A stretch of 63,273 nt of DNA, filler included, from Olpidium bornovanus S191 (GCA_017911155.1; 29 parts of 29 records of this genome joined end to end with filler, not necessarily neighbours in it), one strand, 5' to 3'; counted from the whole stretch's first letter, positions 29,420-31,170 are shown. Notes: a model not told the origin generated them from the sequence alone. Numbers and translations: made by a program.

Positions 29420-29776
29420 NNNNNNNNNNNNNNNNNNNNNNNNNNNNNNNNNNNNNNNNNNNNTTAATTAATTAANNNNNNNNNNNNNNNNNNNNNNNNN
29501 NNNNNNNNNNNNNNNNNNNAAAGGCGCCGGCAATCGTGCCTGTCACGGCTTTCTCTATCTTCGCGGGACTTCTCCTTCTCGCCTCCTTTCTCCTGGTGGG
29601 GTCCTGGCAATTTATGCCAAAGACGTACGGCCTCATGTAGAATGGCGCCAGCCCAAAATCTCAAGCATCGGCACCACGCGTTCCGTCCAACCCCCGGCAC
29701 CGGGGTGCCGTGCGCAGAAAAGCGACCAGACTCCTCCCCCCCTCCGCCCGCCCGCCCGCTCTTTGAGATTTGCGGA

Positions 29777-31170
29777 ATGCCGGGCGCTTCTCCCGAACCG
29801 GCGAGCGTGTCGTTCGACAATTCGAGATGGAGCCGTGCCGTGACGGGGGCTGCCGAGGAATACCGGAACACGGTCATCCTGGTCTGCGTGCTGGGCGCAT
29901 CGATGCTGCTGCACACGCTGGTGTACTCCGAGCTGCGGAAATGGGCTCCGAGGGCGCAGTCGGCGTTCGTGAACGACATCGTTAAAAGCAGGTAGCTTTT
30001 ACAAAAAAAAAAAAAAAAGAAAAAAAAAGCTTTTCGATAGTTTTCACATATCCGTCAAAATTGTCCTCCTTTCCCTTGGTGTTGGCAACGACGCCCCAGC
30101 CAATGGCCGATGTTCTACCTCTTCCCCACGTCCTGCTGGAAAGTCGGCTGGCGCCTCTGGCCGTTCGCGGACGCGGCGGAAAACGAGGCGGTGCAGCAGG
30201 TCTTCACTGTCCTCGTGATCCTCGAGGCGGGCTGGCTCAGCATCAACGGCCTGCGGGCCGTCTTCGCCTCCCTAGTGAGGCAGAACAAGTGGGTCAGGGA
30301 CCCTGCCAAGGCCGCATCCAGGACGAAAAAGCCGACCGCGGAGCAGGCGGAGGCCGAGCAGTCGTGGAACAGGAGGAAAGTGATCACCCAGCTCCGCGTC
30401 ATGAAGCGGCTCTGCTACGGGGGCCTGTTTTGCGCAGTGGCCGGGGCCGTGGTCGGCACGTTCCACCGGCGGCTCGACATCTGGCTCAGCGTCCTTGCCA
30501 GTGCGTCAGTGAGCGGCGCGGAGGGGGCGGGGTGGTCAGCTCCGAGAAAAACCCGATTCGGCGTTCTCAGCCTGACGTCTGCGGCCGGGGACGCGTGTTA
30601 CCGATAGGTACGGCGGGCATCACGTTTGGGATCGCAGCATCGCCGTGGATAAAGAGTATGATCAGCTCGCTGACGGTACGTTTCAGCGATGACGCAGCTT
30701 GCCGAAGGGGGAGAGCGGTAGATGGCCTGCCATGATCACGTACCTCGGTCCTTCGCCTCCGTCAGATCGCCATTGCGCAACCAATAACGCTGGACGATAA
30801 TGTGGCGATCAAAGGCGAATCCGGCGCAATCGAAGAGATCAAATCACAATACGTTGGTACGGAGTACGTTATTTTTCTCCAGCTCGAACGGCTCCGCATT
30901 CAGCCGTGGGACGCTCCGCTCACGCAATTCCGCCGTCGCACAGTGCACCGTCTTTGGGACGGCCGACGGCTGATCCACCCGATATCCGACTTCACTTCGG
31001 TTCCCTTCGAGAACCGCACGAAAACTACGGCGTGGAAGATCGGCGTCATCCTTTTCTACCTGGACCCCCTCATCGTCGCGAACCTGGGCGAGCTGCGGTC
31101 GCACCTCGCGCACATCTTGGCGGCCACCGAACCCGCCAACAAGCTCTGGGACAAGAAGGTGGTTGACATG
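29777..31170 (+). CDS. MscS-family small-conductance mechanosensitive channel of bacterial subtype, four introns, 3' truncated
   Basis: Exons 29777-29991, 30100-30500, 30608-30675, 30766-30856 and 30944-31170; all four introns are GT-AG and phase-matched. Spliced product includes RRKVITQLRVMKR...SVLASTAGITFGIAA...IAIAQPITLDDNVAIKGESGAIEEIKSQYVVHRLWDGRRLIHPISDFTSVPFENRT. An alternative in-frame ATG lies at 29642. Confidence 0.85.

Follow-up and report, generated by a model that had tools for sequence, protein, structure and literature searches.

How an MscS-type mechanosensitive channel with the signature of a bacterial subfamily came to be encoded, with introns, in a zoosporic fungus is the question raised by the locus at 29777-31170 of the window, that is, of the whole stretch of 63,273 nucleotides analysed here. 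The initial annotation had read the gene as acquired from bacteria and subsequently furnished with introns. On the evidence set out below, we are fairly confident that the piece of the window carrying this locus (29520-31170) contains most of a gene for a compact MscS-family channel, which belongs to an orthologue clade of non-Dikarya fungi, has been inherited vertically and likely descends from one old bacterial source.

Structure and transcription of the gene

The piece has a G+C content of about 62%, with an A-rich dip within intron 1. Its ORF listing contains no frame that spans the whole MscS gene. As the initial annotation had noted, no single ORF reveals the gene and four GT-AG introns have to be removed; their excision from 29777-31170 leaves a stop-free frame of 1002 nt, corresponding to 334 codons (Table 1), and the 334-residue translation contains all peptide stretches quoted in that annotation. 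The frame is still open at 31170, where the edge of the piece truncates the gene. Transcript contigs extend about 0.5 kb past this position (X2 rec6 measures 896 nt, 319 of them on the piece). The C-terminal α/β domain lies beyond the edge; residue 334 is located just past the conserved W-D preceding this domain, which is present in the orthologues.

Table 1. Features of the MscS locus and of the adjoining left end of the piece
Feature	Position	Strand	Description	Evidence
Exon of a different transcript of about 1.6 kb	29524..29636	+	Bounded by AG and GT; encodes a hydrophobic segment	RNA contigs X1 rec1, X4 rec7, X5 rec13
Transcribed MscS 5' region	29634..29776	+	5' UTR or N-terminal extension; in-frame ATG at 29642	RNA contigs fit from 29634
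Exon 1	29777..29991	+	From the ATG of the initial annotation; TM1 and 'DIVKS' stretch; ends in phase 2	Translation, alignment, RNA pieces
Intron 1	29992..30099	+	108 nt, GT..AG, A-rich, about 30-45% GC	Splicing, RNA contigs, intron comparison
Exon 2	30100..30500	+	TM2-TM4, charged insertion of about 18 aa ahead of R..TQ..V..R, start of TM3a	Translation, alignment
Intron 2	30501..30607	+	107 nt, GT..AG; junction is the site of the two-residue TM3a deletion	RNA contigs, alignment
Exon 3	30608..30675	+	Remainder of TM3a (gate Ile/Ile), Pro kink, TM3b	Translation, alignment
Intron 3	30676..30765	+	90 nt, GT..AG	RNA contigs
Exon 4	30766..30856	+	MscS β-domain, first half (QPI.LDD ... G..EEI)	Pfam, alignment
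Intron 4	30857..30943	+	87 nt, GT..AG, open in frame	RNA contigs, intron comparison
Exon 5	30944..31170	+	β-domain, second half (R.WD.RRLI.P...F...PFEN), and start of the C-terminal α/β domain; truncated by the edge of the piece	Pfam, alignment, RNA

Nine RNA-derived contig sets under one organism label match the stretch, and the best of them contain 0.76 of its sampled words, a value equal to the non-intron fraction of the piece. All four junctions predicted by the initial annotation are found in RNA-derived contigs, from six runs and two studies. The joints 30500/30608, 30674/30765 and 30855/30943 are seen as GT..AG skips in X1, X2, X3, X5 and X6, while removal of intron 1 is visible in X1-X6 as adjoining pieces of single contigs (29988/30097). 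One contig of 830 nt (X6 contig 18) displays all four junctions in one molecule, and X5 contig 14 displays three. The MscS gene is nuclear and transcribed, and its introns are spliceosomal. The raw-read RNA runs X13 and X19, labelled with the same species, yielded zero reads and do not constitute a test of transcription.

Besides the fully spliced form, contigs exist that retain intron 2 or part of intron 3 (30473-30637 and 30685-30794), at about half the depth of the spliced form. Those retaining intron 2 carry G>T at 30525 and at 30532 and possibly represent another allele or copy. A minor alternative joint, 30605/30685, occurs in two runs (X1 and X3).

At the left end of the piece, assembly and RNA disagree. 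The contigs of the MscS transcript match the piece only from 29634, with different sequence upstream, and the exon at 29524-29636 is part of a separate transcript, about 1.6 kb long, which goes on into sequence absent from the piece; no RNA contig joins this exon to the MscS gene. The two transcript forms have only the seven letters CATGTAG (29634-29640) in common, and therefore the first approximately 115 nt of the contig are joined to the gene differently in the assembly and in RNA. This may reflect a chimeric contig end, a structural variant or nesting of the MscS gene in an intron of its neighbour. The start codon is uncertain, since the mRNA also contains an in-frame ATG at 29642, 45 codons ahead of the start chosen in the initial annotation, and the ORF 29642-29995 shares the frame of exon 1. 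Translation may hence begin at 29777 or at 29642, the latter adding an N-terminal extension of 45 basic, Pro-rich residues. The frame from ATG 29642 stays open through 29 loose letters upstream, and some runs, differing by a T/C variant, have a short upstream ORF there.

Family, relatives and age of the gene

As determined by a Pfam scan, residues 220-284 of the translation match PF00924 (MS_channel_2nd, the MscS β-domain) with E=8.1e-8 and 32.7 bits against a cutoff of 20.2, and no EF-hand is detected in the 334 residues. An NCBIfam scan of the same 334 aa gives weak matches to the MscS and MscM equivalogs. Five hydrophobic, predicted transmembrane (TM) helices precede the β-domain according to a Kyte-Doolittle scan and the alignment. 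The last of these, TM3a, is the Gly/Ala-rich pore helix (S-x-LAS...G-I-x-x-G-I-A-A-x-P); Pro marks the kink, followed by TM3b and the β-domain, and in the alignment Ile/Ile take the positions of the L105/L109 gate of E. coli. Over 280-312 residues the window protein shares 30-37% identity with full-length subfamily members (BLASTP), and it retains most of the positions that are conserved at 85% or more in the subfamily. Among the retained family-invariant residues are R164, T168, Q169, R175, D239, G248, E251, R266, R267, P271, F280, N282 and W327-D328. The subfamily consensus, with its motifs R..TQ..V..R, LLASAG, QPIRLDD and YVVVR.WD.RRLI.P...F...PFENWT, reproduces the motif string that the initial annotation had given for a compact bacterial MscS subgroup. 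The assignment to a compact bacterial-type MscS channel gene, as opposed to one of the Msy1/Msy2 type, is borne out by the PF00924 match, the full-length alignment and the lack of an EF-hand in the Pfam scan.

Structural comparisons were made with the Basidiobolus orthologue in place of the window protein, which in its full form was scanned only against Pfam and NCBIfam. The AlphaFold model of this orthologue (pLDDT 88.6) consists of five TM helices, TM3b, the β-domain and the α/β domain, and a Foldseek search relates it to structures of MscS and YnaI with E ~1e-13. By analogy with other MscS channels, the protein presumably assembles into a homoheptamer and would open under membrane tension, thereby releasing solutes on hypo-osmotic shock; the function as an osmotic safety valve is presumed from membership of the MscS family (TC 1.A.23). 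A specific tie of the family to wall-less zoospores, for which the initial annotation had seen a possible role, is not apparent, because members occur in Basidiobolus, Glomeromycotina and Linnemannia, which lack zoospores.

For sequence searches the segment 30766-31170, comprising exon 4, the open intron 4 and exon 5, was used as query, and orthologues otherwise. An exhaustive phmmer search with this segment against 1.84 billion cluster representatives returned 491 matches at E <= 0.001, headed by Olpidium bornovanus, Borealophlyctis nickersoniae, Basidiobolus ranarum, Geranomyces variabilis and Gaertneriomyces; against PDB sequences and the Atlas the same query, with its intron-derived insert, gave nothing useful. 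The window's own protein was not found in the databases. The best full-length match is that of Basidiobolus (32% identity over 312 residues, E=2e-48). With a profile search the fungal matches were extended to Rhizophagus, Glomus, Funneliformis, Gigaspora, Dentiscutata and Linnemannia, and bacterial members from Lichenicola, Eremiobacterota, Asticcacaulis, Streptomyces, Arthrobacter and Salegentibacter were retrieved as well; the identity of bacterial members to the window protein is 35-40%. The C-terminal half of the Olpidium protein yielded about 1900 matches, the best of which are bacterial (Mucilaginibacter and others) at 45-52% identity, and among these matches a closer eukaryote was not found. 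Neither Dikarya nor non-fungal eukaryotes appear among the named matches, names being attached to only about a quarter of all matches. The subfamily is present in at least 595 bacterial species genomes, a count obtained with four bacterial sequences as query, which biases the loci towards Alphaproteobacteria, and the nearest large Atlas clusters are 100% bacterial. The fungal clade spans Chytridiomycota, Olpidiomycota, Basidiobolus, Mortierellomycotina and Glomeromycotina, with orthologues of 360-510 aa.

Two of the fungal entries call for comment. The deposited 526-aa model of Olpidium bornovanus (JAEFCI010001608.1, 445-2831) is mispredicted: its first approximately 284 residues are low-complexity read-through, and a further stretch of about 17 residues, close to where the window gene has intron 3, seems to come from an intron. 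The actual orthologue of this species is probably a normal MscS protein of about 370-400 aa. A second entry, of 401 aa, falls among the chytrids within the fungal clade; the intronless Logan contig of 1.75 kb that encodes it (SRR8816572) is probably the transcript of an unsequenced chytrid.

A FastTree phylogeny of 298 rows places all 16 named fungal rows in a single clade together with the query and three unnamed rows, at a support of 99. A 103-row IQ-TREE analysis (LG+C20+F+G4) likewise unites the fungal rows and the query, at 100/100. Within this clade the query pairs with Olpidium (100/93), and the zoosporic half, consisting of the query, Olpidium, Borealophlyctis, the unnamed transcript and two Spizellomycetales, is recovered at 98/95; in the other half Basidiobolus branches first, then Linnemannia, then Glomeromycotina, an order that resembles the species tree. 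Fungal monophyly is stable in quick trees, both with added Bacteroidota and other bacteria and with E. coli outgroups (support of 100 and 98). The window protein thus groups with a broad, vertically inherited eukaryotic clade, an outcome that the initial annotation had itself named as contradicting its account of the gene.

The introns point in the same direction. When gene models were mapped exactly onto DNA and their introns projected on the alignment, intron 1 (codon 72, phase 2) was found to share both column and phase with introns in Basidiobolus, Rhizophagus and Linnemannia, and intron 4 (codon 259, phase 1) with an intron of the Olpidium bornovanus orthologue, for which the comparison was restricted to the last introns since the model is wrongly predicted before residue 285 and in the region of intron 3. 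Introns 2 and 3 have no counterpart in the four well-modelled orthologue genes. In addition, orthologues adjoin typical eukaryotic genes, encoding a formin, a P4-ATPase and an EXS-domain protein. From the shared intron positions, the neighbours and the tree taken together it follows that the gene, along with at least one intron, was present before these fungal phyla diverged. Judged by these comparisons, the gene is old and vertically inherited among non-Dikarya fungi, and the family represents an old trait of the early-diverging fungi, one of its introns being older than the separation of several phyla.

Origin of the fungal clade and divergence of the window copy

Where the fungal clade came from is a separate matter. 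The subfamily is otherwise bacterial, and the named matches include no other eukaryotes, from which we infer one very old bacterial source. Descent of the fungal clade from a single ancient bacterial gene would be the most economical reading of this distribution, and we regard it as slightly favoured. In its more specific form, to which we would give about an even chance, a YnaI-like bacterial MscS gene was captured once by the fungal stem, gained introns, was kept in zoosporic, zygomycete-grade and arbuscular-mycorrhizal fungi and was lost in Dikarya. If this is true, early-diverging fungi possess a second, unstudied type of mechanosensitive channel beside Msy1/2, which has been kept for hundreds of millions of years, and gating might be altered in the window copy, whose pore helix is shortened. 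As an old, vertically inherited trait the family is a reasonable candidate for an ancient interkingdom acquisition, and the gene is not evidence for a recent transfer.

The trees leave room for an origin without any transfer. The sister group of the fungal clade receives a support of 22/69 in IQ-TREE; it includes two sequences from densely packed bacterial contigs that lack introns. When the tree is rooted on E. coli MscS, YnaI and YbdG, the outgroup branches are saturated, at 6-10 substitutions per site; in the rooted 41-row tree fungi and bacteria emerge from a basal polytomy, and the best tree itself had the topology of the constraint, at zero support. Given the sister support and the polytomy, the trees neither show nor reject that the fungi are nested in bacteria. 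The clade might accordingly derive from an ancient eukaryotic gene, for instance of the mitochondrial endosymbiont or of the last eukaryotic ancestor, that survives only in non-Dikarya fungi. A sister position of the fungi to all bacterial members is not rejected by the rooted trees, Alphaproteobacteria are numerous on the bacterial side, and plants retain a mitochondrial MscS-type protein, MSL1, which the subfamily profile matches weakly. We nevertheless consider this origin unlikely: it requires many independent losses across eukaryotes, non-fungal eukaryotes are absent among the named matches and from the nearest Atlas clusters, and the fungi show no specific grouping with Alphaproteobacteria, whose predominance is biased by the query used.

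Irrespective of the origin of the clade, the window copy differs from its relatives. In the alignment its TM3a is two residues shorter than in all of them, and the deletion falls exactly at the junction of intron 2. Four positions that are otherwise invariant among about 50 relatives are changed, namely G200W ahead of TM3a, A207T in the LASAG motif, N222S at the equivalent of E. coli N117 and W283R in PFENW. A lineage-specific, charged loop of about 18 residues is inserted before the R..TQ motif, and the branch leading to the window protein is long (1.1 substitutions per site). The intron-2 donor looks like it falls inside ancestral Ser-Ala codons, and therefore the deletion in TM3a may stem from a shifted splice site. 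Reading on into intron 2 (30498-30512) gives L-A-S-A-S, which is nearer to the family motif LASAG than the spliced LAST-AG. An alternative donor at 30509 (GTGAGC) was considered and rejected; it would restore 'LASA' but breaks the frame, and no RNA contig supports it.

These features could mean that the window copy is a paralogue in decay, or a neofunctionalised one, and has ceased to work as a tension-gated channel. The deletion, the alteration of invariant Gly, Ala, Asn and Trp positions, the long branch and the contigs that retain intron 2 or 3 at about half depth would all be in keeping with such a fate. Against it stand the frame, which is open over five exons with all four introns spliced out in one transcript, the retention of most family-invariant residues and the gate positions, which are still hydrophobic; decay or loss of gating therefore appears improbable to us. 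We rather regard the window copy as a divergent member of the family whose gating, to judge from its sequence, may differ.

In the form of transfer that the initial annotation had envisaged, this zoosporic fungus or its near relatives obtained the gene from bacteria, and introns were gained later. The protein does follow the bacterial subfamily signature, and its identity to bacterial members, as given above, was a point in favour of this view. The nearest relatives, however, are fungi of at least four other phyla or subphyla in the clade supported at 100/100, and two of the four introns are shared, intron 1 with Basidiobolus, Rhizophagus and Linnemannia and intron 4 with Olpidium, so that these are not lineage-specific gains after a recent transfer. 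We hence judge an acquisition particular to this fungus very improbable; an ancient bacterial source of the whole clade is plausible. Bacterial contamination of the assembly can practically be dismissed: this type of protein is overwhelmingly bacterial, but four spliceosomal introns are removed in RNA, which, as the initial annotation had argued from their presence, speaks against contamination, and the protein lies inside the fungal clade.

Comparison with known MscS channels

Work on fungal mechanosensitive channels has so far dealt with the large Msy1/Msy2 type only (PMC9367656, PMC13463886). Msy1/Msy2 of S. pombe and MscA/MscB of A. nidulans are MscS-like channels of the ER with a role under hypo-osmotic conditions (PMC9367656, PMC13463886), and they are large proteins with an EF-hand and an affinity to plant MSL9/MSL10 (PMC9367656). 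The window protein is a member of the same superfamily and has the MscS pore helix and the β-domain in common with them. Our literature searches on compact bacterial-type MscS proteins of non-Dikarya fungi found no paper, and the orthologues are experimentally unstudied as far as papers show. The window gene, by itself an ordinary member of its family, shows a compact bacterial-type MscS expressed and correctly spliced in a zoosporic lineage. The family lends itself to study by electrophysiology and, in chytrids that can be transformed, by knock-outs.

Among solved structures, the subfamily profile finds its best sequence match in MscS of T. tengcongensis (3t9n/3udc; 3t9n with E=1.9e-20 at profile positions 85-335), followed by YnaI (~1e-12) and E. 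coli MscS (~1e-11). MscM, MscK and YbiO are also matched, as is the Arabidopsis mitochondrial MSL1 at ~1e-6, and the search did not reach MSL10 and FLYC1. T. tengcongensis MscS and E. coli MscS (2oau and others) agree with the subfamily in the order of TM3a, kink, TM3b, β-domain and α/β domain and in the hydrophobic gate. They differ in having three TM helices compared with five here, and relative to both the TM3a of the window protein is two residues shorter, with Ser in place of E. coli N117. E. coli YnaI (PDB 5y4o, 6urt and 6zyd) resembles the subfamily in its five TM helices before the β-domain and in its overall fold; the profile matches its residues 69-288, and the model of the Basidiobolus orthologue aligns with it over about 330-340 columns at a TM-score of about 0.5. 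In contrast to this structural likeness, the identity to YnaI is only about 17-20%, and the proteins considered here form a subfamily separate from YnaI, characterised by the motifs R..TQ..V..R, LLASAG and YVVVR.WD.RRLI.P...F...PFENWT.

The closest counterparts are the proteins of early-diverging fungi deposited as 'Mechanosensitive ion channel MscS domain-containing proteins', among them Olpidium bornovanus KAG5462791, Basidiobolus ranarum KAK9717632, Geranomyces variabilis KAJ3177110 and that of Rhizophagus irregularis. They are orthologues with the same architecture and are 32-50% identical to the window protein, and the insertion of 18 aa, the TM3a deletion and the altered invariant residues are found in the window copy only.
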